A stretch of DNA of 64,000 bases, taken from NCBI GenBank assembly GCA_964199315.1, contig OZ116708.1, positions 2,108,001 through 2,172,000 of the forward strand, given 5' to 3'. The DNA is from Orbicella franksi. Taxonomy: Eukaryota. The notes under the pieces are model-generated. The model had not been told where the DNA came from. It ran no database searches and saw only the letters and a program-made list of their open reading frames with translations. A program made the translations under genes and the position numbers. Positions 1,300 through 40,600 of the stretch are shown here, one piece after another (position 1 is the first letter of the stretch; each line of letters opens with the position of its first letter).

Positions 1300-4200
1300 A
1301 TGGCTGACTCCAAGCAAAATAACACTTCAGTGTCAACTTTTGCCACTTTCTTATTAGTAGTCTACTTCATGTCTTCATCGCAAGTTGATGGAGATCTTCT
1401 TGTTGATCCTACGTTGATTGGGCAAGAGCTGCAGTCTATTGCGACGAACGCACTCGGTGTGGACGAAATGCAGGTAAGCAGAAGGCTTCAATAACAGATT
1501 TGTTTTAGTTGGATAGCAACGTTTGCGGTCAATTCAAAGCTCAATTTCAAAAGCTCAAATTTGAACATTAGAAACTTTGAATTCAAATTTGCGTTGACGC
1601 GAGTGAAATCAAATTTAGGATCTTCTAGTAGCAAAAGCTCGCGCTCAGGTTTGATTGACCATTTATGGGCAGTTATAGAATCAGAGTTAGTTTACTAAAG
1701 TAAACGTCTGTAATTGATGTTTTAGAGATGCGAATATCCAACCTGATGAAACAGTTGACACACACATTGAATTATTTATAACTGCTCAGCCATTTAAACC
1801 ATTTGTTTGTTAGACTGGAAGGTTTGCGGTGGACTGCAAGCAGTAAATAACAAGCTCTAGGTAATTTAACGTGTTCTACATTTCGAACACTGCATGCATT
1901 TACTGGAGGAAAGTGATAATTCTTCTCTTTCATTTTCGAAGGCTTAACCTCAGAAATATGTTAACGTGTACGTATAATGAATTCTATGCAAATAATCTCT
2001 CTATCGGTCATTATCAGGCTTGAAAGTAAAGATAAGAATTTTGCATAAGTATGAACATGGACGGTCATACTTATGCGAAATTAAAAATAAAAATTGTAAG
2101 CTTTTATGAGTTTGTTTGTCATCATGAAAAGATCAAAACAAGACTTCTTGCATGTGAGGCATTCGATTTGTTTCGGTTTCTAAACATGAGTCTGCACAGT
2201 TGTAGAGATATTGCGTTACGTTATACTGCACGTGCCCTAGCCCGTGTTATTTTGATCACCAGTTTGATTTCAGCCAATCAGATGCTTTGTATGATTATTT
2301 AATTTTGTAACAATTTAAGCAAAAGGACCGTCTGTATTTTGGGGTCCTGCATTGTGTGCAACACTGAGCGAATAAATCACTTAAAGCTCTTTCTTTGTTG
2401 TACGTTATTACACATCGATTTCGCTACATGGTGTCAGAAGTAGGACGGTCTAATCACACGCCTAAGGATGACTGACTCTCCAGCACAAGCACAAGCACAA
2501 GCAGTACAAGCAGGTACGTCACAGATTTTTGTTCCGCCGTCAAATTTGCCGCCGCCTAAAGCGCTAAGCTTTGACGACAATTTAGCCACGACATGGAAAT
2601 CGTGGAAACAAGCATGGAAACGCTACGAAATCGCCACCAGCGTGCACAAACAGGAAGGTGTTGTTCGCGTCTCGACTCTATTAAGCATCATTGGCGAGGA
2701 CGGTGTCAAAGCCCATGACACCTTCACGTGGAATGAGGGAGAAGACCAAAATGACATCGAGTTAGTTTTGCAGAAGTTCGATCAATTCTGTGCCCCCAGA
2801 ACACAAGTTATCTATGAGCGCTATCGTTTTAACAATAGAAACCAAGAGCCAGGCGAAAATATTACCAGCTACCTTACAGAGAGGCGAACGATCGCCAGAA
2901 ATTGTGCACATGATACAATCACGCCAGATGAAATACTGCGTGACCGCCTCGTGTTGGGCATACGTGACGATCGCGTACGCGAGAGACCTCTCCGTTTAAA
3001 CGATCTGACCCTTCAACGAGCCGTGGACCAAATCAAATCTTCAGAGCAGACCCAACAGCAGGTAAAACAAATGACCGGAGGAGACACGTTGGTCCACGCA
3101 TTGAATAAATCTGGAAACTCTGATCATGCTGAAGACGACAAGAAAGAAAACCACCGAGAAAAGAATGTTTCAATTGTGGAATGATCCATGGACGCGACTG
3201 CCCAGCGTATGGAAAAACATGTTTCAATTGTGGAAGAAGGAATCACTTTGCGCATAGATGCCAAGCTTCATCACGAGGAAGGAGGAACAGAGTCTCGACT
3301 GTTCATGAAACCGCTGATCCGAAACAAGATCCATACTACATCGGTTCAGTTGCTGAGAACAAACCCCAGGCACGGATGGCTGTCATCAAACTGCAAATCT
3401 CTTCGCCTACACCTGAGACAGAAGTTCAGTTTCAAATTGACACCGGATCTCAGTGTGACATACTCCCCGCCCGGATATACAAACAGGTGATAGGAGACAC
3501 TGAGCTTCAGCGTCTCAAACCTTGCCAAAAGGAGATCGTTTCGTACACAGGAGAACATCGCAAAATCACCGGCAAAGTCAACCTCCCCGTTTGGTCTGGA
3601 AGACATCGAAAGTCACTTGATTTTAACATCATTGATGGCGATTACCGGCCAATTTTGTCATTAAACACAAGCGTTGGCCTTGGCTTTGTAAGTCTGCACA
3701 ACTGCGATGTCCGAGCAATCCACGTCGACTCCCCCTCCACCACCCTGCAAGACGAATTCACAGATGTATTCGAAAGATTAGGCGCCCTTCCAGGAAAGTA
3801 CCAAATCGTTATTGACGAAAACATTCCACCATGTGTTCATGCCCCGAGACGAGTGCCAGTGGCTCTGCGACAGCGCATCAAAGAAAAGCTTGACGAGCTG
3901 GTTGAACGTAAAGTGCTCGTGCCAGTCACGAAACCAACTCAGTGGGTATCCAGCATGCTGGCTATAGTGAAACCGAACAAGGTACGGATTTGTATTGACC
4001 CAAAAGACCTCAACCGCGCGATACGTCGAGAACATTACCAGCTGCCCACCATCGACGAAGTCGCATCCCGATTAGCAGGCGCCAAGAAATTTACCCTCTG
4101 TGATGCCAAGGACGGTTTCCACCAAATCCTTCTGGACGACACGTCTAGCTATTTGACAACGTTCAACTCGCCTTTCGGACGTTACCGTTGGGCACGTATG

Positions 4201-7200
4201 CCGTTCGGCATATCCAGTGCTCCTGAAGTCTGGCAGCGACGAATGCACGAGTTCGTTGAAGACCTCGAGGGCGTTGAAGTCATCGCAGACGATTTTCTCA
4301 TCGCTGGCTTTGGTGCAACCGATACAGAGGTCAATGCCAGCCTCGAAAAGAATTAACGTGCGTTCCTTCAAAAGTGCCGTGAGTGGAACCTCGAACTTAA
4401 CAAAACGAAGTTCAAGCGAACCCAAACTGAAGTGCGATTCATGGGCCATCTCCTGACCCCGGAGGGCCTGAAGGCTGACCCATCCAAAGTGGGAGCCATC
4501 TTAGAAATGCCTCCACCGAGTGACGTAAAAGAGCACAAGAGATTCCTTGGCATGGTCAATTATTTGGCCAAATTCCTGCCCCTATTGTCTGACATGACGG
4601 AACCATTGAGAAGACTAGATGACAAGGAAGTTGAATGGTGCTGGCTTGAGCAACACCAGAAAGCATTTACCACCATCAAACAGTACTTGGCCGATGCTCC
4701 GGTATTGAAATACTATGACGTCAATGAAGAAGTCACGATCCAATGCGACGCTAGCGAGACAGGTCTGGGAGCGGTTCTTATGCAAAAGGGACAACCCATT
4801 GCCTTTGCGTCCAGAGCTCTGACAGATACAGAAACCCGATACGCACAAATCGAAAAGGAGTTATTAGCAATTGTGTGGTCAGCCAACAAGTTCGACCAGT
4901 ATATACTGGGACGCGATTGTGTGCATATCGAGTCTGACCATGAACCACTGAAAGCGGTCTTCAACAAGCCAGTTCACAAGTCGCCAAAAAGGCTTCAGAG
5001 GATGCTGATGGCTCTACAGAACTATTCTTTGGATGTCCAATACAAGAAAGGAGAACTCATGTGGATATCCGATGCCTTACGTCGCGCCTACCGCAACACA
5101 ACTGAGTTTGTACAGCATGACACAAGTCTCGTCTGCTCAATTGAGGAAATTGACCATTCGGAGAACCTCTCTATCGCCCCGTACCGAATCGCCGAATTCA
5201 GACGCGAGACAGCGAGTGATGCCGTCATACAAAGTCTAATTGCGTCAATAAAGAGTGGATGGGCGCCGTCAAAGAAACAGTGTGACCCGGTGCTTACACC
5301 GTACTATGACAGGCGAAGCGAATTCTTGGAGGACAAAGGATTAATATTCCTTGGGGAACGGCTGGTTGTACCTACATCCCTGAGGAAAGAAATGTTAAAG
5401 CAAATTCACAGGTCACACATTGGAATCGAAGGATGTCTCCGTCGTGCCAGAGAAGTCTTGTACTGGCCACTCATGAACGCCGAAGTGAAAGATTTTATTT
5501 CCAAGTGCTCAATCTGCCAATCCCATAAGCCTGACCAGTGTCGTTAAGACATGCAACCTTATCCAGTACCGCCACGCCCTTGGTCAATGCTCGCTGCTGA
5601 TCTGTTCGAGCTGGGACAACAGCAGTTCTTTCTTCTGGTGGACTATTGGAGTGGGTTCTTTGAAGTACGGGAGGTAAAAGTGGCAACGTCCGCCAGTGTG
5701 ATAGCTGCATGTAAAGTCCAGTTTTCACCACATGGGATACCCGACGTGCTAATCACCGACAATGGATCGCAGTTTGCGTCATCAGCTTTCACTGCCTTCG
5801 TGAGCGAGTGGCAGTTTGAACATCGTACCTCCAGTCCTCGTTATCCCCAATCAAACGACCGCGCAGAAAATGCCGTGAAAACCTGCAAGAATCTGATGAA
5901 GAAAGCAAAGGCAGATGGACAGGACCCCCTGTTAGCCCTTCTGGATTGGCGCAACACACCAACAGAAGGGATCGGTACATCACCGGCTCAGAGGCTGATG
6001 GGACTCCGTACTCGAACCTTGCTCCCTACACATCAAAAACTCCTGCTGCATTCCGGTCACAATGATACTGCAACCAGACTGGCTGGTCGCAAATCGCGAC
6101 AGGTGCGTCAGTACAACAAGAAGTCGCGACCCCTTGAACCACTGAGATATGGACAGGCCATCCGCATGAGACTCCCCGGAAAACCGGAAAGGTCTCTGGG
6201 GACATGTACACGTGTTTTGAAAAACAGGTCTTATGAAGTCGAGGTATGTGGGAGACGTTATCGTCGAAACCGTCGACAACTGAGAATGACACCTGAAGTT
6301 CTTCCGCCCGGTAACCTACAGGAAAGTGAGTTGCCTGACCCTCTCCCGAAACAGTCCCAGAAGTTGAGGCTAGAGACCAGTCAGATCCCCGAGCAAGAGA
6401 CAGCTGAGCCACTGGTAGCCAGTCGTAACCCCAACAGTGGGGCTCACACTGAACCTGAAGTGGAGCTAGTAGAGGTGCTACCACGCCGTTTAGAACGCAG
6501 GCGTTGTCCGCCTGTATGGCAACGAGACTATTACATGACGTGATTATCTCGTGATCTTGTAATCTCAAAGTAAACTGAACATTTATCATTGGAGCCTTGA
6601 ACTTGAACTTTCAGTTTTTTTGTTTTTTTGTTTTGCTTTTCTATTTCTCGTTGCATTTAATCTTATATAAAGAGGGAGATGTAGAGATATTGCGTTACGT
6701 TATACTGCACATGCCCTAGCCCGTGTTATTTTGATCACCAGTTTGATTTCAGCCAATCAGATGCTTTGTATGATTATTTGATTTCGTAACAATTTAAGCA
6801 CAAGGACCGTCTGTATTTTGGGGTCCTGCATTGTGTGCAACACTGGGCGAATAAATCACTTAAAGCTCTTTCTTTGTTGTACGTTATTACACATCGATTT
6901 CGCTACAACATTGCGAGCAACTGACGGCGGTTGAAAGACGGTGGGTAGTAAAAGTAATATAATTCAACATTGAAGTGAACGAATAAATATCTACAGAAGC
7001 AACAAATTTGCAAATGTAACTAGATAGGATAGGTCAATACACAGGGGCATCCAACGATCTGTTCCATAAAACTATGTTCCTCATAAATCCTGCAGGTTCA
7101 TCTAGAACATTTTATTTTATTCATTTTGTTTAGAAACATTTTGAAAGCCTTCAATACCATGACCAACTCATATCAGAAGATGACATCATTAACTTGGCCG

Positions 7201-10200
7201 GAAAGCTTCGTAACAGGTTTACGAGAAGGTTTGATATTGCAAAACGCCTTCAGAAGGCAGTTGAGGAATCGTACTCCAGGACAATGAGTACCGCGCCACA
7301 AAAAGAATGCTGCCTAGTCAATAAATCGACCCTGACGTACGATGCACGGTTTCGTTCCAAAGTCGACCTAGACACTATCTGCCTGAAAATTTCTGGTCAT
7401 GTTCCTGAAAATCCTGGATATTTAGACCACAGATTTTTCGAGGAAACGAAAGCCATTTCGGAGGAACATACTTATGTCAAGTGGCAGTACTTCGGATCAG
7501 AGGAAGGTGTTATGACCAACTTTCCAACATATGATGATTCTGAACCATGTGACAGATACGATCCTCGTTACAGACCTTTTTATGTGGAAACTGCTACTCC
7601 TGAAGCGAAAGATGTGGTGCTTGTTATGGATACAAGCTGGTCTATGACTGGAGACAAATTAAGGGTCGCTAAAGAGGCTGCAATAACAGTTTTAGATACC
7701 ATGAATCCAAAAGATCAGGTAAGTAATATTCAGTTATGTTTGAAAAGAGGGCAAGTCAGCTTTGTCGTTTTAGAGAAAGACGTTCCCAAATTATTGAACA
7801 AGGGCCAAAACTTCCGGGTGCAGGTCGAATAACATTAATATTTTGCACCTTTTGTTTGGCAAGGAATGCAGTGCAGATTGCACGTGCATTTCCTACCAGG
7901 AATATGGCCACATTAATGATTGTAAATGTAAATGTAAATGTAAATGCAAATTTAATGTCAAACACAGGAAGTGCTTGCGCGATCACCCGAGCCAGAGGCT
8001 CATGATAACTAGTGCTTGACAATAATCCAGATCGAATTGGAATTTGGAAATGTTTTTGAGGAGAGGGGAAAACCGGAGAACCCGGAGAAAAACCTCTCGG
8101 TGTAAAGAATTGAGAACCAACAAGAAGCTCAACCCACATATGACGCTGGGTCCGGAAATCGAACCCGGGACACATTGGAGGGAGGCGAGCGCTCTCACCA
8201 CTGCGCCAACCCTGCTTATCACACATCACGAGAATACCCCTGCTGAACGACCTTCTGAAAGGTCGTCCCCCCACAAGTGACTACAAATGATGGTTTCTAC
8301 AACTATTTCCATTCATCTATTCACTGGCTTACGTTAAGAGTGAGGTTAATTTTCCTTGCTCCAGGTTACTTGATTTTCGTCGTTCTAAACTGATCTAACC
8401 ACGTGGGCCACGGAGTGTCATGTGACTCTTTTGACCCAATGATTTTTAATTTTAAGGTTGGCATTGTTTCATTTGTGGGGGACGTCAAGACGCCACAAGA
8501 TGTTGACTGCTACAGTGAGCAGTTAGCTCTTGCAATTCCTGCAAATATAAGACATTTGAAGGACTTCGTCGATAAACAACACGCTTCTAATGGTAAGTAA
8601 ATGGCAACGTACCTGACTGGATAAAGGAGTCGACTTTCCCACGCTGCAAAAAACGAATGATCCATCTGATATTCGTATAGTGCGTAGTTACACCACCTAT
8701 GTAGTTGATCTGTAAGGTTGTCACGACACCTTTCAGTTTTTTGAAACATGATTTAAAAATTTAACTTCACATACTCGCCGCGGCAGTTGATTTAACTGTA
8801 AACTGCAAATTCAAGATTGATAAATAGCCAAGCCGTCAAAAGAATCTATCTTCTGTCCCCAGTTTTACCGGTTATTGTCCTATCTGCAAGCAATGACAGA
8901 ATGGTTTCTCCAAGAGAGTTCGTTGATGCTCTTATTTCTTGCTTTACAGGTCAAACAAGATTCATACCGGCTTTTGAGAAGGCGTTCGAGTTACTGAAAG
9001 GCTCGGTCTCTAAAAACTCAGGGAAAAGCAAAAAACGAGTTATTTTATTTCTGACGGACGGGGATCCCTCGGATTCCAAGGCTGACTTGTTCGGGATCAT
9101 TAGGGACCGGAACTTGGAGCTCAATAACTCTGTCATCATTCTAACGTACGGATTTGACAGGGCATACCAGGAAATTCTGATAGATATCGCCAACCAAAAC
9201 ACGACAAAGTATGGCGTACCAGCAAATACGTCTGTCGGAGACATCGCGGTAATGTAGCAAATGTAACGCATTGTTGATGCGCCACTCCCACTCATAGGCT
9301 TATTCAGCAGACCAACAGGGGATTGGGGCAGAAAATCCCCAGGCTGACCTTTAGAACTTTTTTAGTATTTAGGGATAAAAAGCCGCCCAGATTTGCGAAT
9401 TTGGTTGAAATTCAATTGAGAACAATTTGGTTTGACATGTCATTGTAATCAAATGCGATATTTTTAGGGAGAATTTAACGTTCCCGTGGCGACGGTATTT
9501 TGAGCGACATTTGACAGATATGAAACTTTTTGTGTTTTCTTTATCAAAATCTGACTTGCATGCAGGACTTTGAGGTAGTTTCGATTTTCTTAATTTTGAG
9601 TCATTTTAATTGTTTGTCGAGTGCTGCTCTACAGTGATCGATATATGTTTTTGAGATTTCCAAAATCATGCTAAAAATGGTGACAATGTCCCTTTAAGTA
9701 CTTGAGGTGGGTGCTTTTTGGTTTCATAAATTTAGTATGGCATTTGAAGACAACATTTTCAAACTAATTAATAATTTCATCAAGTCTAAACAAAGGAAAT
9801 CATGACCGTGACAGTGTTTGGATATCTTATCTTAATTAGCATAGATTTTTACGACTTTTATTTCCGTTTTTCTTCTTACTTTAGGTTTTGATTGAGAACA
9901 TTTATCAAACACTCAAGACAGTGTTTAACCACATTTCCAAGCACCTCAAAGTTCGTCAAAGATACTCCGCTACGCGTCGTATATTCAACTCTCTTCTCGG
10001 TGTTTGAAAATGTGGTCAAACACGGTCTTCCGTGTTTGAGATATTACTTCTCTCTGTTACTTATCCTTGAGGTTATATAATTGGACGTACCTCCAGACTC
10101 CAATACCTATATACCATACTTTAGACATTCTTGAAATTACGTAGGATCGTTCTCTCGATCATCCTTGTCTTAGAATCTGAATAGGGCAAGATAATGTTCC

Positions 10201-19200: not shown

Positions 19201-20767
19201 GCAAGAGCTTGAAAGAAGGGGAAGGGTAGGGATAGCGGGGTGTTTGAAATAACCGAGTTCGAGATAACGGGTACCTTTACACCANNNNNNNNNNNNNNNN
19301 NNNNNNNNNNNNNNNNNNNNNNNNNNNNNNNNNNNNNNNNNNNNNNNNNNNNNNNNNNNNNNNNNNNNNNNNNNNNNNNNNNNNNNNNNNNNNNNNNNNN
19401 NNNNNNNNNNNNNNNGTTGCGACACACAAGCTCTGGAGACACATGATGACACAATACAGTATGTTGCACCAAGATTGTATCCTGCAAATGCAACGTCGCG
19501 CACATTGTTGCTGCAACTCAGTGCTGACTCCTTTTATCTTTGGCAGACGATGAACCAAATTGTGGCCAAGCAGAGACGTCAAGTCCAGATGGTGGTGATA
19601 ATGGCGGTTTGTCTACTGGTGTCATTTTAGGAATTTGTACAGGGTGTATAATCATCGTGGCGGTGGTAGTGGCTGCACTATATTGGGTAAGAAACTAGCC
19701 AGTTAATCTCTTCTGTATATTGTGCCTAAGATAGTTGCCATCTCAGTTAATGGGTGTTACTATTTATGGAACTTAATGAAGGGTTTTAAATCTGATACAA
19801 ACACAGCTTTACAATTCCTCCTGATTCACAGGACGCCTTTGGCAGGGGCAAATTTGGAACGTACATTTTAAAATCCGATTTTTTTTCATATTAACATTCT
19901 GTAGTCGAGCATTTTCACCGTGACTATCTGCTGATGTTTTAAGCATATAAGAATTCTAAAAGATAAGAATTTTCACCTTCGGAGAGTACTGAATAGAATT
20001 AAGTTTGCAGCTTGACTAACACGTGCACATGTGCGGGTTTTTTTCTTCAGGGTAAACGTCATTACCGACCAATGGGTGATATGCCGAATAATCATGAGCC
20101 GGACCATCCCATGTCAATTGATAACCCCATTGGTCCTGTATACGCAGCTATCAATGACACCCAGAGAGAATCTGGATCACAACCTTCCACAAATGGAGAC
20201 CTAAACATCATAAGTAAGCAACCTGAACCTCATGACCAGCTACCAAGCATTCCCTTGAAAAGAAAGGTCAGTGGTAACCAGCCCCCTCCCATTCCGGCAA
20301 CACGGAGGCCTTCTGGAGCCGTAGAAACACTGGCTATGGGAATTTTGCAGTTGAGCGATCAAGAACATCCCAGAAAGGCATCCATTGACGTTGGAAGAGT
20401 AAACGCTCATCGAGCTAAGAGACCTTCTGAACTTGGCGACCCATCTACCCCTATTCCTGAGGAAAACACGCTTCAGGTGACATACCCGCCGACCAGTTGG
20501 GGAAACAGCGAGAGAGTCTATGGTAATATGCAGTGTTCTGACATGACAAACATATCAAACCATCTTCCTGAAAGGGATATGCCTCAGACAACAAACCCGG
20601 CGACTATTTCGGAACAGGGAGAAAGACTATATGGCAATGTAACGCCAAAGGTTGCTAAAATACCAGTGGAATCACATGATGAAGGGGCTGGTGATATCAC
20701 TGACGATAATGTATACTTGGAATTCGGTAATACCGGGGAGGCTCCTGTAGAAACACAACAAACTTAA
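1300..20767 (+). CDS. CACHD1: Gene A: VWA- and dCache-domain type-I membrane protein (CACHD1/alpha2delta family), ~1324 aa, 15 exons
   Basis: Manually spliced exons: 1300-1473, 7134-7718, 8457-8592, 8950-9248, 10231-10360, 10652-10931, 11839-12035, 12478-12558, 13430-13748, 15479-15667, 17168-17514, 18064-18202, 18770-19011, 19547-19686, 20051-20767. All introns are GT-AG and the total of 3975 nt is in frame. Landmarks: signal-peptide-like N-terminus, WQYFGSEEG, YDPRYRPFY, VWA DTSWS...VILFLTDG, PYVDAFG...GTD, YDPRRRPWY, Cys-rich stalk, TM VILGICTGCIIIVAVVVAALYW and a 238-aa tail. The symbol denotes the family (CACHD1-like), not proven orthology. Confidence 0.9.
2201..2428 (+). repeat. 5' LTR
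   Basis: TGTAGAGATA...TTCGCTACA; differs from the 3' LTR at 5 of 228 positions; contains AATAAA at 2371-2376. Confidence 0.95.
2429..2445 (+). promoter_or_regulatory. Primer-binding site, probably tRNA-Leu
   Basis: TGGTGTCAGAAGTAGGA directly follows the 5' LTR. It is complementary to a tRNA 3' end ...CUUCUGACACCA, which I recall as tRNA-Leu. Confidence 0.75.
2468..6543 (+). pseudogene. Disabled gag-pol polyprotein of the LTR retrotransposon
   Basis: Gag starts at 2468. Knuckles CFNCGMIHGRDC and CFNCGRRNHFAHRC, protease DTG, RT (DAKDGFHQI, MPFG, IADD), RNase H (CDAS, EKE, SDH), integrase HHCC and core (DLF, TDNG, RAENAVK) are all visible. Lesions: one frameshift at ~3130-3160 and in-frame TAA codons at 4354-4356 and 5545-5547; ORFs 3181, 4432 and 5551 share one frame. 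Confidence 0.92.
6669..6679 (+). promoter_or_regulatory. Polypurine tract
   Basis: AAAGAGGGAGA lies immediately before the 3' LTR. Confidence 0.85.
6680..6907 (+). repeat. 3' LTR
   Basis: 228-bp direct repeat of 2201-2428 with TG...CA termini. Confidence 0.95.
7921..8216 (-). mobile_element. tRNA-derived SINE in intron 2 of gene A
   Basis: The minus strand has an A box (TGGCGCAGTGG), a B box (GGTTCGATTTCC), a central GGTTTTTCTCCGGGTTCTCCGGTTTTCCCC domain and an (ATTTAC)n tail. A related copy lies at 48181-48370. Confidence 0.85.
9903..10043. repeat. ~140-bp imperfect palindromic interspersed element
   Basis: Arms TATCAAACAC...CCACATTTCCAA and TTGAAAATGTGG...GTGTTTGAGATA flank a CGCTACGCGTCG core. 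Confidence 0.7.
12060..12360. repeat. Compound tetranucleotide microsatellite (GACT/GATT/CATT)
   Basis: Runs of GACT, GATT and (CATT)n in intron 7 of gene A. Confidence 0.85.
12735..13339. mobile_element. Non-autonomous Tc1/mariner-pogo(Tigger)-type element, 605 bp
   Basis: TIRs C[C/A]GTCGAACCTCT[G/A]TT[A/T]AGCGGC, TA duplication on both sides (12733-34 and 13340-41), and internal CTATTAAGCGGCC repeats. Confidence 0.85.
14660..15340. mobile_element. Penelope-like retroelement remnant (GIY-YIG endonuclease C-terminal region), two fragments in opposite orientation
   Basis: Minus-strand YTSRKIKDKIKVREDKPP...LHQRIEEHEGSAVGQHLREQH. Plus-strand ~15125-15230 reads KFDCLIFK...LKPTLNK...IRAK, followed by a 3' non-coding motif ending GTCGAAACG. 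Confidence 0.65.
16349..17091. mobile_element. Non-autonomous TIR DNA element with subterminal ATTACATTTA repeats
   Basis: Termini TATCACCGCTAA / TTAGCGGTGATA. Segment 16368-16441 is the reverse complement of ~16880-16955. The right arm carries about ten ATTACATT(T)A units. Confidence 0.8.
19285..19415. other. Assembly gap (131 N) in intron 13 of gene A
   Basis: Run of N. Confidence 1.
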
Positions 20768-25157: not shown

Positions 25158-25212
<55 letters not shown>

Positions 25213-25252
25213 CCTACTACTACTGCTGCTACTACTACTGCTGCTACTACTG

Positions 25253-25296
<44 letters not shown>

Positions 25297-25298
25297 GC
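25158..25298. repeat. (TAC/TGC)n trinucleotide microsatellite, 47 units, just 3' of the gene B stop codon
   Basis: Seen directly; it generates the spurious poly-Y/C and poly-S ORFs. Confidence 0.95.
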
Positions 25299-25301
25299 AT
25301 T

Positions 25302-28300
25302 CTAGGGAATGCATTTTACGTAGCCATGCACATCAAGGCAAACAGAATTACTTCTCTCGCGATTTAGTCGACCTGGACTGTAAGAGCCACACTGTTGTGA
25401 CTCACCAGCAGCAGGTTGCAGCATATTGGTATCGAGTGGACTCCTAAGTTCAGAAACAGGCGAGGAAGGCGTCTTGGCCAGCCTGTTCTTCAGAGGAGTA
25501 GTGGCATTTGTATTGTCTTCCGAATGTCTTCTGGGTGGTGCAGGAATTACTTGTGCTGATTTACCTTTCTCTTCAGGAATATCCAATGGCGGAGAATCGA
25601 ATGCCCTTCTGTTCTGATACTCAGGTGGCAATGGAGGTCCATTACACTCTCCCTTCTCCTCGAGATATGATGCCTGAATGCTCGTTGTTGGACTAGTGGC
25701 ACTTGCAGCTGCAACAGATTCCTTCCGGCGAGGAGGAGCGTCCGGTGGTTTCTCGACAGACCGGACTGTCGTCTCATTGTCATAGGGCGATGGCCCCTGA
25801 GCGGAAACTATCGGAGCTATTGAAGCCTGAGGTGGAGACTCTAACGAAACAGGTTCATCATAATGCACATCAGATCCGGCATTGTCGAGTCCCAGCTCTG
25901 GAAGAGGCTCTGGAGGACGTGTCCTGGTATCTGTGGGCTCCGCAGTAATGATGTCTTGCAAGGAGGTACTTTCGCTGCTGTTTGTTGGAGGGTCGCGGCA
26001 ATATTTTGTTACCTATATTGAAACAAATTGACAAAAACTCCAGCGTTAGAAAACCACTCATCCAAATCGGTTTCAACAGTAATCAAATCAAGCATCTAGT
26101 TTCAACGTAGTTTCCTCGGGGGTTACGGAGACACTTACAACTTTCACGGTAACAAAAAACTGACAGCATTATAAATTTCATCTTGGAGTTTATAGCGCTA
26201 TAAAAGAATAGTCCTAATTTGTTTTTTAACAAGAGATGGAGCTATGCTTACCAAGAACGTGGTTATCGCTATAACCGCCAGAAGAGCCGTACACCCAAAG
26301 GCAATTCCTGCAAGAGCTCCAGTCGACGTACCATGACCGCTGTCTTTCTGAACTGCGTTAACTTTGTCGTTAGTTCTTTCGTCCCTATGTGGATGAAGCG
26401 TTGTGTTCGAGGCCCTCATTGGACACTTTATATTTTCAGCTGAGGATAGTTTCAAAGAAACAAAAGTAATGAGCATGTGAGCTTGGAAAGAAATAACGGT
26501 ATAGGTAGAGTGTGAGAAAGATGGAAAGATGTTACTTGATGAGACAAGCTATTCGCAGAAAAAGGCAAGAATTGATGGATCATAATCCTAAAAGTGAGTG
26601 ACCGAGTGTGAGGTCAAGATGGCCGTATATTGGCCTTGTTTTCTTTTGCATGTAATAAAATACCTTCTCTTCCTCTAAAGCACACTTCTGAACTAGCACA
26701 GTAAGGCTTTTTTAATGGCACATCGTCTTTGTCGTTCTTACACCAATAGCAGCCAACGACGCCTTCACATGTTTGCGAACTGTTTCTTTCACTGCAGCGA
26801 GGATCAAAACATTTTTCTAATCCCGGGTTAGGATCTAGATCTTTGCATTTCATTTTAGGGACGGAAGAGCTGTGGTGACCAGTTTTCGCCTCTATCTCAG
26901 GCGCCGACCGTGGACAAATAGGAATGCTGAAAATAATGCAAAACAAAAGTAGGATTATGTAACACATTGTCTGACAAGCTTGAGCCACAGTAAAGCTTCG
27001 TACCTATTGATTATATGACACGACAGTCAAATCCCAATTTAAGGAGGCTATGTCACTATACAGACCTACCCTAGGCCAGCAAACGACTTTTTCCTCTCTC
27101 TTTCTCAAATAACTTTTTTAACGCACACATCGCTCGCACGTTACCGTGACCGTGGACAGAGATAGAAAAATCAAGAACGCGCTAAGAAATAATCAAATTC
27201 CAGGATTCGAAAAACTACCTTCTTGAAAAAAAATAAAGCTCTTTTGAGACGTTATTCCATTGCTGTCCATTTTAGATAAAGAAGGTGACGGAAATCATAG
27301 AAACGTCTAAATGTCAAATATTTCTAACCAGTGTCAAATGTAGTTTTAGTTTTTTAGCAAAGTAATTTTTTGATGTCAGGGTCCGCTTTTTGGTAATTTA
27401 ATGACATACGATATGCTGATTGATTATTTGGAATGCAGTGCTTTATTTCAACTACATTTTCCCGCTTTTACAAAATTACATTGGCAAACCTGCTATCGGG
27501 GAATTGATTAAGGCAATAACGAAAATCCATGGAGGAGGTGCAGGGGCATTCACACGTCAAGTTGAGGAAGGAACATTTTGTATCCAAAGAACAGGGGCAT
27601 GGCTCTGGAGTGCAGAAAAGCTCTCTGACCACGACTCCTGCGAATAAAGATTGATAAATGTCGATGAATTTATGGAATGGCTAGATGACTGACTGACCGA
27701 CCGATCAGTCGATCGATTGATAGATCGATAGATTGCCTGAGTCAGACAGGCAGTCAGTCTGAAAGACAGGCCATAGACAGACAATCATTGACAGTCAAAC
27801 AGACACTAAGATAGACAGACAACCAGCCAGCCAGGCAGAAAGTTAGACGAGCAGAACAACACCCATGCATTAATTGAGCAATCTTTTAAATGCTGTAAAA
27901 AACGGTTGAATTACGAACCTATATATGCGTTGGTTCCAATAATTTGCGCCATCTGGTATTTGGTGCATCTTGCACCACTTCTAAGAGTGTCCACTCCACC
28001 CGGTGGTAAGTGCACCTCGTAAAAGCTTTTCTTCCGAATCTCTTCTAGATCGCGGCATTCTCTTTTTATCAAGTATGTCTTCTTGATTAGATCTTCTGCG
28101 ATATATTTGTCTTTCTCAGTAATATGCACGTATTCTGCATCTGATGCTGCAGTTGATGAGAGCAAAAAGTCTTCGTGCATAATGAGGAAACCAGCACTGT
28201 CCATCACGAAACAAGAATATGTTTTTGTCCATTTACACTTTGGGTAAACCTTGGTGAGTAATCTGTGCAAATAATAGTATAAAATGATGATTTGCTATAA

Positions 28301-31300
28301 GCCATTTTTTTATTTTCTATTGTCAGCAAAAATGATGAGATTTGTCACATGTGAAAAACAACTTTTACCTGTGGAAATACGTCAGCGGAAAGTCAGCCGC
28401 CATTACTCCCAGAACCTCATCGTTTGTGTGGTGCATATGACTTGGTTCTCCGCGATACAACGCCCGCCCAGCGGTTATCACCACTCCAGCACCCCCAGAG
28501 TCCACGTATGGAGACGTAAGAGCAAGTAAACCCGTGTGGGCCAATGCTGTGCGATACCTAAAGACATTAAAAATTGAGAAATGATTTTGTTGCCACTGAA
28601 AATTCTGCCTAACAAATGTAATGCAAGATGGGTCATTAATGATCTTACCATAGCAGAAAAATACCAGAAGATTAATATTCATGTAACACACGTGATGCAT
28701 ATCTCTTACCAGGGTCTCTGCCTTGGATCGTAACCTTTGTCTTCCAAACTACCTGGAGTCCATCTAAGAACTCCATTTGATGTACCAATGTATCTCCAGA
28801 CCAAATATTGTGTGAGCTCCGTTTTGTCACGCAACCACAGATCTTCCACTTTCCATGTCGCAATCACCGTGTCCCGGATGTCACTCTTCAAACCTGGATT
28901 TGTTACTGTTCCCGTTTTGTCCTTCATGTAAGCAGTTAGAAGATCCACGTCGGCCTTCGTCTCTTTCTTACTTATGAACTCAAACGGGTCCATGTAGGCT
29001 CCTGGAGCAAACTTTACCACTGTAGTGTCTGGCAAAAATATGTAACAAAGAGGAATGGCTGTTACACTTCGAGAATATGGTGCTTTATCGTGGTCTCTTT
29101 ATCTCTTTTCTCACGGTGTTTTTCTGTCACCCATGGTATCTTTAAAAACGTTCTTGTACTGTTTGTACATTTTCCAACAGTCTGACTAACTTAAACGAGT
29201 CTCTGAGATCTAGAATTGTCACACAAGATAGTATCTTCTGATAAGATCTAGACAAAGTTGACGATTTTTCTCTTCTTGTTACCTGTCTGGTTGAGAAGCT
29301 TAGTTTATATTGAGCAGAGTTCAGGTGAAGATGTTCACCAATTTAACATTTTTGCAGGTTACTTTCTTCAGTGGTTATATGCAAAGGTTGTTTACCTTTA
29401 GCAGCATATGTTCCAAAGTGGGAGCATGGTTTCTCGGGATGAATTAAGTCGATTCGGTGGTATTTAAACGTATAGTCTGAAAAGGAACAATAAAGCCATC
29501 GCAACTTCAAGGATTTCGCTAAAAGGTAATGTGAATCAATATTTGGATCTGTATTCTGACAAGAACAATCCGAATAAAGGAGTGGTAGCTGCTTTCACTT
29601 GTTTTCACACCTGCCCGATTAGTGGGTGGCCAAATGCATGTTTCAATCTTTTGGTTGACTGATTTGTTGGGTCTATTTATCAATTAGATTAACGTCACAC
29701 TAGATTGTATTTGGTAGGTAGACAAAACGTTACAAAACGTAGCCAATTGATCTACATATATAGTCCAGAGGGGGGTCCTCGATAATATTGCCATACTTCT
29801 TCTTCATTTATAAAGCACACAACTAAATATAAAACAATGAACTGACACTGGCAGACATTAATTACAACATCAACGATACAGATAACGGCTCTTGAGGAAC
29901 CTACCAGGAGGAATAGTGAGGGAATTTAGTTGATCCTTAGCGTGTGAGACAGGTACGACTACACCAACGGAGAAATCAATTTCAGCCAATGGCGCCCAGA
30001 AATACGTGCAGTTCATTTCGATGACCGTTACTCCATCTTTTTCTTTTTCCCCTCGAGGCAGAAATCGCTTGGCAACAAATGTCTTCGAACCGGATTTTCC
30101 ACTGAGTGAAAGGAAAACAAAACAACAAATTGAAAAATTAGGTACTTTACTTCAAGGTGACGAAGAAAGGAAAAGAGAATGAGGTTTACCATGAGTTCCA
30201 TGTGGGAAGAAAGAGAAATATTTCGAGGAAGAATGACATAGATTAGTTACGAACAAAGAAACTTCACAATTTACATCCAAATTTGATATTCACAGCATAA
30301 TTAACTTAGCAATAATGTAATAAGAAGCAATAAAAGTGGACCTTTTCTCACCTGGATGAGTTTTAAATTGTAATGAAATTGGACTTACTACAAGAAGTAC
30401 TACTGTATTAAAATACCCAGCTTAAGCCCAGTCCATTGTAAATGTTACTTCATACTAACTTTTTAATCGAGTCAAAGACATCGGTGAATTCTGTCTCCGT
30501 TTCCAAGGTCCTTATGTCTATAAAAAACGGCTCCCCGTACGCATCAGTTGGAATTGGTAAGAGTGGATGTATTAAGGTCCTCCCAGAGTTGCTCACGACA
30601 AACGCATATGTAGTCTGGCCTTGATTAAAGAATGTGATGTCTGATAATAGGTCCTCAACGTGAATATCGGTACCAACTACACCGATAAAGTTTCCTTTAT
30701 GGAAACAAGGTAAAGTGATCGTGACCATAAGGCCTAAAAAAACAAAGAGATAGACTTTAAATTCAAACTGGTTATATTGTTAATTGGGATATACAAACAC
30801 TGTAATGCTTGTGCAGAAATCCGTAAAACGGCATGAAAAGCAAAATAATACAATCTAGTTAAAGAGAATGGTGACTGTATGGCTTTGTTTATTACATTTT
30901 CAAACGCCGGAACTTTACTTTGAAATGCCTAAATGTTCAAACCACGCTAGCTATCCTTTTAGCCACACAGTTCCTAGTGTCATATTAACCAATCGAGTGC
31001 ACCACACAGATCCGTATACAAGTGGTTTATAGTACCTGTGCCCAAAGCGTCAATATACGGGACAGACACAACCGGACTGAGCTGCTTTCCCAGAGCAAAT
31101 AAGTTGTAGTACGTTGCCATTACACTTCTTAGGGTTTTGATGTCTTCGAGAAAGGTATATCTTCCAGGCTGAAAATGTAAAATCAGAGTTCCAAAAAAAA
31201 TTACATAAATAAATACACGTTTTCAAGCCAAACTGTACGTAATCATTTTCAAAGGTAAATATTTTTGTATCCCTAATGACAGCCAATGTTTATCGATATT

Positions 31301-32185: not shown

Positions 32186-35100
32186 GTTTTGCCAGGCAAG
32201 AGCGTCCCCATTATGTGAAATATTCTTTGAAACAAGATTATCACGGTTGAAAGGACAATTTAGTCAATCGAATTAATCCAGTCACGATTCACTGTAGAAA
32301 TGTTCAAAGCGTCGCCCAGTGTACTAGCTATCCTGCTACAACTAATGTCATCTCATACACCTTTAGCGCTAGCGGCATTTTCTACGACTAGGTTTGGCGG
32401 TTTGTTAGTAATCCTAATATTTCATTGCAATATCGACTTGATATCTTTTTTTATTACCGGGATGTCTCCAACGGAGGTATTTGCTGGTACACCATATTTT
32501 GCTGTGTTTTGCTTGGCGATGTCCTCCAGGATTGCCTGGTCTGCCTTGCCAAATCCATACGTTAGAATTATAACAGAGTTGTTAAGTTCAAAGTTTCTAT
32601 CTCTTATGGTCCTAAATATTAATTCCGTCTTCTCATCGGAAGGTGCCCCATCAGTCAGAAACAAAATGACTCTTTTCTTCTTTTCTCCCGATTCTTCAGA
32701 GATTGAGCGTTTCAGGAGACTGAAAGCTTTTTCAAATCCTATTCTGTANNNNNNNNNNNNNNNNNNNNNNNNNNNNNNNNNNNNNNNNNNNNNNNNNNNN
32801 NNNNNNNNNNNNNNNNNNNNNNNNNNNNNNNNNNNNNNNNNNNNNNNNNNNNNNNNNNNNNNNNNNNNNNNNNNNNNNNNNNNNNNNNNNNNNNNNNNNN
32901 NNNNNNNNNNNNNNNNNNNNNNNNNNNNNNNNNNNNNNNNNNNNNNNNNNNNNNNNNNNNNNNNNNNNNNNNNNNNNNNNNNNTATGAAATCACACCTTA
33001 AAGGGCTCTCCCAGTTTCATATAATGATTAGTGTTGTTCAGCTGCAGTAAACTTTTTCTTTATCTCTTACCATAAGGTATCAGCCCATCGACATAATTTT
33101 TCATGCATCTGATATTTGCAGGGATTGCCAGGGCTAACCGTTCACTGTAGCAGCGGCTTTTGCTTCCAACGTCTCCTGGAGTTGACGCACGATTGTTGAA
33201 TGACACGACCCCAACCTATAGAATTCCAACATATTTACATTTATTTGGTTTGTAAAATAAAGCTACTGTGTGTTCTACTATCAGATGGGAAGAAAGAAAT
33301 CCAAGACTAGGAAGAAGACTTCATGGCCTGGGGAAGTTTACTCAGACCTCTGGCTTGGGACACCCTCAGGTTAGGCAAGTAATACATTACTTTTTAATGA
33401 TAAGGGTCCGAAAATGGTGAATCAAACCCCTTATTTCCTTAAAAAGCATCGCACAGAAGGATTCTCCCTCCTTGATTGTGGTGTTCAGGCAATACAGTTG
33501 AGTCGTGTAGAGTTGTTTTTGGTTTGTTCTAGAGGCTTCGTTGCCCATTATTTCTTTGCCTCAAGCAGGAAAGCACAAATTTTCTCGAAAACTTTCTTTT
33601 TCCCCATAAATCGATCCAATTGACCATTCTTAGTCTCTAACGAGCAAAATTTGGCTCGTGAAGGAATTCATACGTTTTTGGTTAACACTTACTAATTACC
33701 ATGGCCAGAAATGCTTGACACGGGCTATTTTCCATCAGAGTCGACTCTCTTACTTCCAGCTTTATCCTAGATCACTCTTTTTCTACACTTTCTGTATCCA
33801 CATATCACCTACCTGGTCTCTTGGGTTCATGGTATCCAACACTGTTTTTGCCGCTTCTTTAGCGATGTACAGTTTTTCTCCACTCATGGATGCACTTATA
33901 TCAATAACAAGCACTACATCCTTGGCTTCAGGGGTGGCGGTTTCCACGTAGTACGGTCTGTAACGAGGATCGAACTTGTCACATTCCTCTTTGTCGTCAA
34001 ACACTGGATAGACTGTCGTGACACCCTCCTCTGATCCAAAATACTGCCACTTCATGAAGGGATAAGTTTCCAAGATGTCTTTCATTTCCTGAAAAACACC
34101 GTCATCTAAATAGACTGGGTTTGGAGAAGCGCTGCCAGAAATCTTCATGCAGACGTTGTCGAGATCCACCGCGCAGCGAAATCGTTCGCTGTACTTCAGC
34201 GTCGATTTGTTGATGTGACAGCATTCTGTTTGCGGCGCGGCTTTCTCGGACCTGGCGTACGAGTCCTCGACAGCTTTCTTAAGGCGTTTTGTAATCTCAA
34301 ATCTTGCCTTGAACTTGTCAGAGAGTTTCACTGCTAGATGTGGAGTGATCTCTTCTCCTTTGATTGTTGACTTATGGTACTGAAATCCATCAAAATAATT
34401 CTAAAAAATAAAAGAAAAACTCTTTGATCTTTTGTTATATAACTGACGATGAATGAGCGTGACTGGCCAGCCTACCTTAAATATTTTCTATATTTCTAGT
34501 AAGCGCTACAGACGTCACAGTTTGAATGCACAAGTTTAATCATGCGTAAAAACGAGTAAACAAAAGTGATCGTGGGTGTGTGATGTGTGTGTGATTCAAA
34601 AAACTGTGGCGACTCGAATTCTAGAATTTGTACTTCCGGGCTCACACAACAGTAAAGCAGCTAAGGAAAAAACGCGGTAGCAACCAGCAGATCGAACTTT
34701 CAGCGCTAACAAGCACTGGCCAAAAGTGAAAAACACAAAACTACGTATAATGAAGAACGCTTAAGTATTACAGAGTGGGTTGCATGATTTCCAGGGGTCA
34801 CGGAAAAACGTGACACCCAAAAGCAAACAAAAGTTCTAGTCGCTACATTTTCCTTTAATGGAAAGAATAGCAAATCATCTAGAGAGAGGGTATTCTGCAG
34901 CCAAAGTCAACTTTCGTTTCACATTTACATGAAGCAGAACCTTTAATAAGTAGTGTCAAGCAAAACAATGCAGGTAAAATTAACAAGGGTAGTGCTATGA
35001 CGTAAGGTTCTTCTATGTAAATTACCCGGAAACGTGTCGCAAAAAAAAAATCGTTAGTGTCTTATCATTTGCGTGTAACGTCAGTCAGTTTAAACAAGTA

Positions 35101-37693: not shown

Positions 37694-40600
37694 CATCAAA
37701 TTTCCGGAAACAGGGGTGCATTCTACACTGTTCATTATCAACTGATTGATAGTGCATATTTTTGGAATGATTCAGCGGGAGCTCTGATGATTGCATGTGA
37801 AAAACACCTACTACGAGAACTTTAGAACAGAAACGATACGTCGAACATCCGTGGAATGAAACGAAAGAGAAGAACATGAGTTATTATTTATCCACGCAGC
37901 TAGCTACGTTTTCAGAACACCCCCTTCACCATGAGAAGGCAGGAGACGAAATGGTAACGGAGAGTTGTCAACTGCATTGGGGAACAAGAGTCCTCCATGG
38001 AACGCTTCTCAAAATATACCCAGAGATAAATACTTTAACGCGGTTCAAAAGTTGTTGTTCCAAAACAAGTGTTAAAACATTGCAGTGGTACAAGTCGACA
38101 ATGTACTAGACGTGGGGAGGGAGAAGTCAAGACAACTTGCATTTGCTGGCGAGACAGTCAAGAGTCCCAACAATTTGGACTGTAAAAACGAGATACAGCT
38201 TTCAGTTTCTTTTTCAACCCGGTTTATTTCAACCTACTACCAAAATGCCTTAATTAAATACCTACTGCAAATTGATAACTACAGTATATAAATAATTCCA
38301 TCTTTTATGAGAAAAGCAGAATAGTGCAAATTGTCCACTTCATTTGAACAAAAGTTCATGGCAACTTTTGTCCTGGTCTAGATTATAAGGCTTATCTTCG
38401 GAGTTGCCAATAATACGTTGTAGACTATAGCTACTCGATATCACAAACCAATACCTTAAAATTCCTTTTGCAGTGGTATCTTGGTTAGTAAAGTGATCAT
38501 ACACTAATAGATACTGACAGTCCATGGTATAAGAGACAGGAGCTTCTCCTGACTTTCGAGACCATAACTTTGGAGGCTATACCGATATTTTTAAGCTAGT
38601 AACAATTTATAATTTGTCAAAACTATACTTGATACAGTTTAGTGACATCGACGCGACCGCACCGCGTTATTTATTTTCTCCTTCCTCGGACAACGCTCGC
38701 AGGTTCTAACCGTTTACTTAGTCTCGGTGTTTGGGAATAATCTTTCAAACTGGGTCCGGTGCTGCGTTCTAAGAGATGCACTTTACGTAGCCTTGGGGAT
38801 CAAGAGCGACAGAATCACAGCTCTCGCGCTGTGACAGACCTGGCCTGCTAGAGACACATTGCTCTGTTGCTTCAGCTGTGCGTGGTATCAAACTGTCATC
38901 AGACGGGTCCCTTGGTTCATGGACGGGTGAATTCAAAACAGCTGACGAAGAAGGCCCACCAGGCAGCATGTTTGTATCAGATGCAGGACTCTCTGGCTGG
39001 TCTTCCGATAGCCTTTCGCCTTCGGAGGCAATAAATGTTATGTAGCCATTAGGATCAAGGGTGATTGAATCACAACTCTCGCGCCGTCGTAGACCCGGCC
39101 TGTTAGAGTTACTTTGCTCATTTGCTTCAGCTATAGGTGGCATCAAATGGGTATCAGACGGGCTCTTAGGCTCAGGACATGGTGGGGGTAAGTTGCTATA
39201 TTGGTGCTCCCCTTTCTCGTAAGCAGCTGGTGAGGAAGGTCTATCACACTGAATCAATGGCTTGTCGTCAGATGGCCTTTTCTCTTCAGAAATTGGTGGA
39301 GGTGGAATTACAAGAGATGCGCGTTTCTTTTCAAGAACGTATGGTACCTCACTGTCTGTAGAGGGGATTTCTGTTACGGCACTGAGTGGAGTAGTGTTCA
39401 TGGCAGCGCCCGATGTCCTTCTTATTTGAGACAAGCGAGGTTGTGGATATCCGCTGGACTCTATCTCGCTCCTTTTCTCAGGATATGATGTCGGATAGCT
39501 TACACATCTAGGAATGATTTGGGTGGAAGTCGTGGATGGTTTCCTTGCAGGTGGCAGGGCTGGAGGTTTAAACCGGGCTCTTATTTCATCATAAGGTGAT
39601 GGCCACCGAACAGAAATTACTGAAGGTTTACGGGAAGGCTGCAACTCATCTGGATCGTCATAATCCTCATCAGATGCAAGATCCACTGGTTCCGGAAGAG
39701 GTGCCGGAGGACGAGTAGCAACATCTGGATTTTTAGGATCGATAATCTGTCGTGTTGAAGCGCTCTTATTTTTGTTCATAGGTGGTCCGCCTAGGTTACG
39801 GCGATGTCTTATTACCTATAGAAGCAAATTGGAAAGGGCTGGTATGTTTAGAAACCTTAATTCTAGATGTTAGTTGATCCATAAAAACCCCAATTCATTA
39901 GGAGCATGTCTCAGCAAAAAAGGTGGCTCTCCTAGTGTTGGTAACACTCAGAACCATCTTACCTTAATATAACTTTTTCATTCCTCACACACACACACTA
40001 AAACAATTTAACTCCACTCATTGTCATATGTACGCCTACATTCGACCCCTTAGACACGCAACTCTGGATCCTATGATAGCCAGGTAAGAATTGACTTACC
40101 AAGATCGTTAATATCACTATTAGAGCCACAACAGCAGTGCAAGCAATCACAGTTCCAACAATAACTCCGGTTCGTCTGCCTTCATCGTCAGCGACAAATT
40201 TATTTCTGGTTTTGTTAACTTGGTGCGGTTGTGACGTGATCTTTGTACTCTCAAGTGGACATTGTTCCTGATCAGCTGTGCATAGATTAACAAATCAATT
40301 TCACGACTATTGATTTTTGGATACTTATTTTTGCCTTATGCATTGTTGACTAGGAAGCAAATGGCTATTAAAATAGCTATATTACAAGTCACAAGGTGAT
40401 ATTAATAGCCTTTGCATTTGCTACAAGAAAAGCTGAGGCTGAAAGACGTATTCGAGTCTTTAATACATGGTATTACCTTCTCTGCCTCTATAGCACACTT
40501 CTGAACTAGCGCAGTAAGGTTGTTTTAATGGCACATCATCTTTGTCGTTTTTACACCAATAGCAGCCAACGACGCCTTCGCATGTTTGCGAACTGTTTCT

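Follow-up and report, generated by a model that had tools for sequence, protein, structure and literature searches.

The 64-kb window analysed here, the whole stretch of contig OZ116708.1 from the coral Orbicella franksi (positions 2,108,001 to 2,172,000), holds four clustered CACHD1-like genes, A to D, and our subject is the cytoplasmic tail encoded by the last coding exon of gene B (25302-26012, minus strand). Gene A, which ends at 20767, is on the plus strand and the other three genes are on the minus strand; coordinates below are window positions on the strand of the respective gene. The exon boundaries given by the first-pass annotation of this DNA, made from the letters alone, are exact: the stop codon TAG occupies 25302-25304, and an AG acceptor directly precedes the exon start at 26012. 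Open reading frame (ORF) and RNA contigs define a tail of 236 amino acids that runs from VTKYCRD to GYVKCIP. The exon is joined by a phase 0 splice to a transmembrane exon at 26252-26441 (minus strand), delimited by sequence and RNA contigs, whose product GALAGIAFGCTALLAVIAITTFL is hydrophobic. In RNA contigs of three studies, 26012 is joined to 26252, where the transmembrane exon ends. Introns farther upstream in gene B, four in number, are likewise removed from these contigs, which show a spliced joint at 26439/26664. This splicing indicates that gene B is expressed and that its product is a type I membrane protein whose cytoplasmic tail has 236 residues.

On the exons of gene B, Pfam recognises VWA, VWA_2 and VWA_N at 33783-34331 and dCache_1 at 30450-30728, with single-exon scores below the whole-protein cut-offs because each exon carries only part of a domain. 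CACHD1 (PDB 8s7c_A) is the top match of three gene B exons (E 2e-23; 2.2e-10 for residues 834-951; 2e-7 for residues 1027-1083), and alpha2delta-1 is matched on the VWA exon only (E 1.7e-8). Gene B is closer to CACHD1 than to the alpha2delta subunits, also in the C-terminal addition to the ectodomain (the FZI region), and unlike those subunits it encodes a single-pass transmembrane anchor followed by a cytoplasmic tail. Judged by ectodomain, membrane topology and closest solved structure, genes A-D belong to the CACHD1 family. Pfam matched no family on the tails, and among ESM Atlas look-alikes of the C and A tails none was usable. Only one database relative of the tails carries a name: an Orbicella faveolata model (P0044) that is 98% identical to the C tail, seems to repeat part of it, and is publicly named ‘histone-lysine N-methyltransferase 2D-like’. 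This label on a C-type tail probably arose by mis-annotation on account of the proline-rich composition, and the assignment to CACHD1 corrects it.

The other tail exons lie at 38769-39815 (gene C, minus strand, 348 amino acids), 57357-58403 (gene D, minus strand, ~95% identical to C and with the same motif set) and 20051-20767 (paralogue A, plus strand, with a motif set of its own). Genes C and D are recent tandem duplicates with a period of ~18.6 kb, and their tails differ at 36 of 348 amino acids at a synonymous divergence (dS) of ~0.05, so that comparing B with C/D amounts to a single independent comparison, not two. The B and C/D tails are homologous (tblastn E 1e-20 and 6e-18) at 33% identity, whereas identity over the ectodomain exons is 72-84%, which marks the tail as the fast-evolving part of the protein; between A and B, ectodomain identity is 49-61%. 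The O. franksi genome contains only three copies of the B/C/D-type tail, all within the window. In three other assemblies, B-type and C-type tails share one contig (1.12 Mb, 826 kb and 320 kb), and two of these contigs also carry an A-type tail; the gene cluster is therefore old and syntenic.

For a test of motif conservation beyond the window, a profile of the three window tails was run against 1.84 billion representative proteins and returned 26 exon-sized ORFs; with three further searches, the set grew to 62 B/C/D-type and 24 A-type tail ORFs from outside the window. With the window's three included, the 65 B/C/D-type tails form 41 clusters at 80% identity, 39 of them outside the window, and the sampled lineages are coral-like. 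Conservation was scored as cluster-weighted identity in outside-window sequences only, the motif residues being taken exactly as listed by the first-pass annotation. That annotation had proposed that tyrosine and proline motifs are selectively retained in an otherwise divergent tail, and had named a test of orthologous tails against their flanks as one way to check it. Across the 39 outside lineages the motif residues are indeed the more conserved, with 0.58 versus 0.29 in flanks when B is the reference (Mann-Whitney p 3e-8) and 0.66 versus 0.31 when C is (p 6e-15). The same difference is seen in lineages that are neither of B nor of C/D type (B reference, 0.46 versus 0.20, p 2e-6; C reference, 0.58 versus 0.20, p 4e-15). 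Among segments of the same length, RPPxPLPE and the terminal GY[IV]xC[IV] rank in the top 0.3-1.2%, and YD[DE]P, SPYD(EI) and KPPxxPPxRKxS in the top 2-9%.

A MAFFT alignment places RPP[EA]PLPE, YD[ED]P, SPYD, KPPxxPPxRKxS and GYV[KQ]CI in common columns of B, C and D, and the comparison with outside lineages gives the ancestral form of each motif island, which we label with M numbers along the tail. The ancestral M1 of the B/C/D lineage is RPPAPLPE; its counterpart in B, RPPEPLPE (25896-25919), has a mean conservation of 0.73 over the 39 lineages and lies in the top 0.4% of segments. M2, ancestrally S-D-E-[DN]-Y-[ED]-[DE]-P-D (conserved Y, 92-100%; P at +3, 87-100%), is the acidic Y-[DE]-[DE]-P motif represented in B by HYDEP (25851-25865). 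The ancestral M3, W-P-S-P-Y-[DNE]-E-I-R-V, has Y, E at +2 and I/V at +3 at 89% each outside the B lineage; in B itself it is degenerate (GPSPYDNE, 25773-25796), having gained one residue by insertion and lacking both the W and the I at +3. M4, PPxΦPPxRKxS (Φ, hydrophobic), corresponds to the proline-rich and basic KPPDAPPRRKES of B (25716-25751; mean conservation 0.48, top 8% of segments). M6 is a basic serine site, (K/R)(K/R)xS, followed by VIPPPP, and EKGKSAQVIPAPPRRHSED in B (25515-25571) is the equivalent of (K/R)(K/R)xS-x-VIPPPP in other lineages. M7 reads E-[HR]-Q-Y-x-N-[LVIM]-P, with Y at 82%, N at +2 at 85% and a free +1 position (G, S, C, Y, N or D). The terminal module joins M8, SPSDTxLMPP, to M9, S-x-x-L-D-x-x-G-Y-[VIL]-[KE]-C-[IV], which stands near the C-terminus (Y 90-100%, V/I/L at +1 100%, D at −4 90%, G at −1 85-90%, C at +3 80-90%); in B the module spans 25305-25445 (RSPLDTNMLQP ... 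RERSNSVCLDVHGYVKCIP). In gene C the islands lie at 39690-39713 (M1), 39642-39665 (M2), 39582-39605 (M3, WPSPYDEI), 39534-39569 (M4) and 39186-39209 (M7, EHQYSNLP), with terminal copies GYITFI at 39030-39059 and GYVKCIS at 38772-38804; gene D has M7 at 57774-57797 and the terminal GYVQCIS at 57360-57392.

These alignments settle which of the correspondences drawn by the first-pass annotation are real. Those of RPPxPLPE, Y[DE][DE]P, SPYD, KPPxxPPxRKxS and GY[IV]xC[IV] are homologous. The pairing of EYQN in B (25611-25622) with QYSN in C/D falls away: the two do not align with each other, B orthologues carry ESQN or ECQN in this place, and the tyrosine has a conservation of 0.09 (segment rank 0.64), so that EYQN reads as a chance YxN. 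The SxYxxI pattern of an immunoreceptor tyrosine-based inhibitory motif (ITIM) holds for C/D, where SPYDEI fits it, and fails for B, where SPYDNE has E at +3. RERSNS, taken for a 14-3-3 or basophilic-kinase site, is present in B (25344-25361), but its conservation is not above background (segment rank 0.21 overall, 0.45 in outgroup lineages), and sequences of the B lineage have RERSDS, RERSNS, RENSNS, RESSNS, LERTNS or HERSNS.

Within the islands it is the tyrosines that stand out. Those of YDEP, SPYD and GYVKCI in B have conservations of 0.94, 0.81 and 0.92, ranking 1, 16 and 2 among the 236 residues, so that the two most conserved residues of the whole B tail are tyrosines; the remaining four of its seven tyrosines are at or below 0.10-0.13. 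A fifth tyrosine (ASYLEE / TSYPEK) is common to B, C and D but has a conservation of only 0.10-0.13 in other lineages, which means that identity within the window cannot by itself single out functional sites. Changes from tyrosine to phenylalanine are almost absent at M2, M3 and M9 in B/C/D-type tails, suggesting that the hydroxyl group matters.

The same islands are set apart by their substitution pattern (non-synonymous to synonymous ratio omega by Nei-Gojobori, Fisher test on non-synonymous counts). Between C and D, omega is 1.03 over the whole tail, 0.50 in islands and 1.23 between them (p 0.002); between B and its orthologue on contig L001, the corresponding values are 0.88, 0.39 and 1.21 (p 0.0004). 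The island mask was derived from the wide alignment of the 41 clusters, which includes the tested sequences and makes these contrasts slightly circular. In both comparisons synonymous counts and rates are equal in islands and flanks. By these measures the motif islands are under purifying selection and the spacers evolve neutrally, and the selective retention that had been proposed thus stands and reaches well beyond the window. A separate possibility, that gene B is a decaying pseudogene, was ruled out: the gene is spliced and expressed, its ectodomain exons are 85-95% identical to those of the orthologue, and its islands have the low omega just given.

AlphaFold2, run with the alignment on the C tail, predicts no helices and no fold (predicted template modelling score, pTM, 0.20; mean predicted local distance difference test score, pLDDT, 55.7). 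Local pLDDT peaks coincide with the motif islands, and a small hairpin with a local pLDDT of 84 is predicted at LDxxGY[IV]xF. From sequence and model together, the tail is intrinsically disordered, with short linear motifs set in a neutrally drifting spacer, as is typical of such motifs in disordered regions.

The paralogues have not kept the same set of islands. The B lineage (11 sequences) retains M1, M2, M4, M6, M8 and M9; M7, the YxN island, is deleted in all 11, and M3 carries the one-residue insertion (YDNE[MT] versus YDEI) and has lost its tyrosine in 4 of the 11. In the C/D lineage all motifs are present and the M8-M9 module is duplicated (SPxSDTxxMP ... RESCDSxxLDxxGY[IV]x[CF]I; 38772-38990 versus 39030-39164 in C, 57360-57578 versus 57618-57752 in D), a duplication common to the whole C/D-type lineage in other assemblies. 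A more distant tail clade (P0016, P0020, P0021, P0059-P0075) adds two motifs absent from the window, N-P-L-Y-[VE]-E-T of the NPxY type and D-[AS]-D-x-Y-M-x-P, the latter at the place where the window tails have SPSDTxLMPP. A C-terminal PDZ ligand was considered and ruled out, since the last residues vary (-CIP, -CIS, -CFV, -CIA, -IIP) and the M9 motif occurs internally or with 3-10 residues after it. At the membrane end of the tail, a basic, Cys-containing juxtamembrane stretch is conserved (25992-26012 in B, 39786-39815 in C), reading V-[TI]-[KR]-[YH]-C-R in B and several lineages and VIRHRRNL in C/D; its cysteine could be a palmitoylation site.

The tail of paralogue A, with a mean column identity of 59%, is more conserved than the B/C/D type. 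It contains N-P-x(0-4)-Y-x-x-I, with Y and I kept in 20/20 tails, E-R-x-Y-G-N-[MV] twice (in 19/20 and 16/19 tails), a PPPxPxxRRPSGAIETLAMGIF block, the strongly conserved RRPSGAIETLAMGIF, and several RxxS / RRxS sites. In the window these are represented, on the plus strand, by NPIGPVYAAI (20123-20152), PPPIPATRRPSGAVETLAMGIL (20282-20347), ERVYGNM (20510-20530), ERLYGNV (20621-20641) and the terminal DDNVYLEF (20702-20725). When B/C/D-type and A-type profiles were compared with hhalign, only the terminal module aligned (probability 55%, E 1e-4); for the other A motifs, homology to M3, M4 and M7 is suggested by order and pattern only.

Several further features of the window were recorded in passing. 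Just upstream of gene A, ORFs of a long terminal repeat (LTR) retrotransposon, split over several frames, occupy 2468-6543 (plus strand), where Pfam finds reverse transcriptase, RNase H, an integrase zinc-binding domain and the integrase core. Directly 3′ of the gene B stop lies a (TAC)n/(TGC)n microsatellite (25160-25300), presumably within the 3′ untranslated region, and the plus-strand poly-Tyr/Cys ORF that crosses it is spurious. Runs of N are found at 19285-19415, near the transmembrane exon of gene A, and at 32749-32983, inside the VWA exon of gene B.

Taken together, the conserved tyrosine and proline motifs suggest a tail to which adaptor proteins that read phosphotyrosine may dock. 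Conservation falls on the positions that matter to SH2 domains, namely P at +3 in M2, E-I at +2/+3 in M3, and, in M7, N at +2 with a free +1 (the pYxNx rule of the Grb2 SH2 domain), and each of the four tyrosine islands shows the position-specific pattern of a different SH2 class. The classes have well-described counterparts: YDxP repeats are the Crk/Nck sites of p130Cas (PMC10279719), pYEEI (pY, phosphotyrosine) is a ligand of the Src SH2 domain (PMC3507883), and YSNL of PEAK3/PEAK1 is an experimentally shown Grb2/CrkII SH2 site (PMC10279719). The O. franksi genome encodes potential readers and writers, with at least 51 SH2 exon matches above cut-off that include Src-family SH2-kinase ORFs and an Abl-like SH3-SH2-kinase ORF. 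In the likeliest mechanism, Src-family or Abl-type kinases would phosphorylate the conserved tail tyrosines, whereupon SH2 domains of Crk/Nck/Abl type would read M2 (pYxxP), those of Src type M3 (pYEEI-like) and those of Grb2 type M7 (pYxN), and a pY-[IVL]-x-Φ reader would take M9. SH3 or WW domains would be recruited by the proline motifs. In this way the tail would serve as a phosphorylation-switched adaptor scaffold beneath an ectodomain whose vertebrate counterpart binds Frizzled/LRP6 and CaV channels. Reasoning from sequence patterns, we put the chance that the tail is such a tyrosine-phosphorylation-switched adaptor tail at about even. The first-pass annotation had called tyrosine-kinase coupling a property not established for this family, and in keeping with this the literature searched contains nothing that links CACHD1 to phosphotyrosine or SH2 and nothing on tail motifs, cnidarian ones included.

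Several observations weigh against an adaptor tail of this kind. M3 (YDEI), M7 (YxN[LIVM]) and, in part, M9 also fit an unphosphorylated YxxΦ sorting signal, and mammalian Cachd1 alters channel endocytosis, slowing that of CaV2.2 (PMC7905535). M1 and M4 fit a conserved generic PxxP core, not a strict class I or class II SH3 consensus across lineages: by inspection, M1 (RPPAPLP) has Ala where the class I consensus needs Pro, and the M4 consensus PPxΦPPxRK has its basic residue one position too far, so that a class II fit exists in B itself only (PDAPPR). The terminal tyrosine of the A tail, in D-D-N-V-Y-L-E-F, is replaced by H, F or C in 7/16 tails, indicating that in A this motif does not need a phospho-acceptor. 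In HEK293 cells, the intracellular domain of rodent Cachd1 alone had no effect on a Wnt reporter (PMC7615972). A complex prediction pairing the Abl-like SH3-SH2 (L004, residues 53-218) with residues 31-96 of the C tail, in a setting where the phosphate cannot be modelled and without controls, counts neither for nor against docking (score 0.01, partner pLDDT 38).

The fit to YxxΦ leads directly to an alternative in which the conserved tyrosines act unphosphorylated, as YxxΦ / GYxxΦ sorting signals for the mu subunits of AP-2, AP-1 and AP-3. The proline motifs would in that case recruit WW/SH3 endocytic proteins, and the tail would govern how long the CACHD1 complex stays at the surface and how it is endocytosed, for which the effect of mammalian Cachd1 on CaV2.2 offers a precedent. 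YDEI (M3), Y-x-N-[LIVM] (M7) and the C-terminal G-Y-[IV]-x-[CFI] (M9) conform to such signals, with a hydrophobic +3 residue in 86-89% of lineages at M3 and M7. Binding of YxxΦ signals by mu2 needs the tyrosine hydroxyl, and the scarcity of Y-to-F changes is thus compatible with sorting as well. However, a strict YxxΦ (Y-x-x-[LIMFV]) is found in M7 and in M3 outside the B lineage, and neither in M2 nor in B's M3; M2, the most conserved tyrosine of all, has Pro at +3 and cannot be such a signal. Nor does mu2 require the near-invariant Asn at +2 of M7 or Glu at +2 of M3, the Cys at +3 of M9 in 80-90% of lineages is atypical for Φ, and the B lineage retains M2 and M9 while its best YxxΦ candidates, M3 and M7, decay. 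We regard sorting as the main rival account of the tail, less likely than phosphotyrosine docking but able to coexist with it. A further alternative dispenses with tyrosine chemistry altogether: the CACHD1 complex would have a cytoplasmic partner of its own, such as Wnt receptor or channel machinery, to which the islands would bind through aromatic and proline contacts together with Ser/Thr phosphorylation, and the likeness to SH2 and SH3 ligands would be coincidental. The tolerance of the A terminal motif for H, F or C hints at such contacts, as do conserved residues that reach beyond SH2 footprints (W-P-S-P before M3, S-x-x-L-D-x-x-G before M9), the conserved basic Ser sites beside the motifs (KKRxS, RRPSG) and the predicted hairpin at LDxxGY[IV]xF. 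Such a partner does not account for four tyrosine islands each patterned on a different SH2 class, nor for the tyrosine itself being the most conserved residue, nor for the near-absence of Y-to-F exchange in the B/C/D type, and we consider it improbable.

The simplest alternative, that the motif matches reflect chance and composition in a low-complexity Pro/Ser-rich tail, describes the EYQN~QYSN pairing well, given that composition alone (7 Tyr, 4.7% Asn) predicts ~0.3 YxN per tail, and it likewise covers the fifth tyrosine that B, C and D share and other lineages lack. It is excluded for M1, M2, M3, M4 and M9, and as a general account we think it has almost no chance of being right: the tails can be aligned as homologues (E 1e-20), conservation of the other motifs extends over the 39 independent lineages with the p values given above, and the islands show lower non-synonymous divergence (dN) at equal dS.

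Among these possibilities we favour a phosphotyrosine-docking tail. What is new here is a previously undescribed, strongly constrained motif architecture in the tail of a known receptor family. For a CACHD1 tail characterised so far as no more than unstructured, it gives a concrete peptide-level hypothesis, and the differences between B, C/D and A in the docking-type sites that they keep offer a natural experiment. One might speculate further, on sequence grounds and with distinct reservation, that CACHD1-type co-receptors have an ancient tyrosine-phosphorylation-dependent tail that couples the Frizzled/LRP6- and CaV-binding ectodomain to tyrosine-kinase signalling, and that the coral paralogues became sub-functionalised by loss and duplication of sites. 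If so, the tail would combine Crk/Nck/Abl-type, Src-type and Grb2-type sites with a C-terminal pY-[IVL]-x-C and proline motifs; B would have lost the Grb2-type site, and C/D would have doubled the terminal module.

In vertebrates, the CACHD1 ectodomain binds Frizzled/LRP6, and the protein modulates CaV channels. The coral genes share with vertebrate CACHD1 (PDB 8s7c/9eq6) the VWA_N-VWA-dCache ectodomain and, as matched by gene B, the membrane-proximal Cys-rich region (residues 1027-1083). Both have one transmembrane helix and an unstructured cytoplasmic tail, the vertebrate one being described only as ‘an unstructured cytoplasmic tail’ (PMC7615972), with no function or motif reported for it. 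The literature also lists CACHD1 as a substrate of BACE1 and gamma-secretase. The tandem four-gene cluster (A, B, C, D) is a coral feature. The metal ion-dependent adhesion site (MIDAS) of the VWA domain is DxSxS in the coral genes (DISASMS in B, ~33800-33900, minus strand; DTSWSMT in A, ~7600-7650, plus strand), whereas that of mammalian Cachd1 is described as non-conserved (PMC7905535).

Outside the family, the tail resembles several other systems. HYDEP, DYDDP and NYEDP of the coral tails belong to the same YDxP / YDxV class as the repeats of the p130Cas substrate domain and the nephrin tail, which serve Crk and Nck SH2 domains, but those proteins are not homologous to the tail and carry 3-15 repeats, where each coral tail has one copy. 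A second likeness is to LAMP1, which ends in GYQTI: the coral GYVKCIP is likewise G-Y-x-x-hydrophobic close to the C-terminus, and YDEI and YxNL also fit YxxΦ. Compared with such sorting signals, M9 has mostly Cys at +3, lies 230-340 residues from the membrane instead of 6-10, and is not strictly terminal, given the internal C/D copy and the extensions in some lineages. In organisation, the coral tail is close to that of Robo, a long disordered receptor tail conserved only at short tyrosine/proline motifs (CC0-CC3), which recruit Abl, Ena and SH3 proteins and have been lost lineage-specifically among paralogues; the two have no sequence relationship and differ in their ectodomains. A similar motif arrangement is found in PEAK3/PEAK1, where YSNL, a proline-rich CrkII SH3 site and a 14-3-3 site adjoin one another in a disordered region (PMC10279719); YSNL is identical in C and D, and there too the surroundings are disordered and contain proline-rich and basic Ser motifs. 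The PEAK proteins, which are pseudokinase scaffolds of the cytosol, are not homologous to the tail, and their PxLPxK consensus for the CrkII SH3 domain matches neither M1 nor M4 of the coral tail. Their binding is experimental, that of the coral tail predicted, and in both the motifs were found as islands of conservation (PMC10279719).

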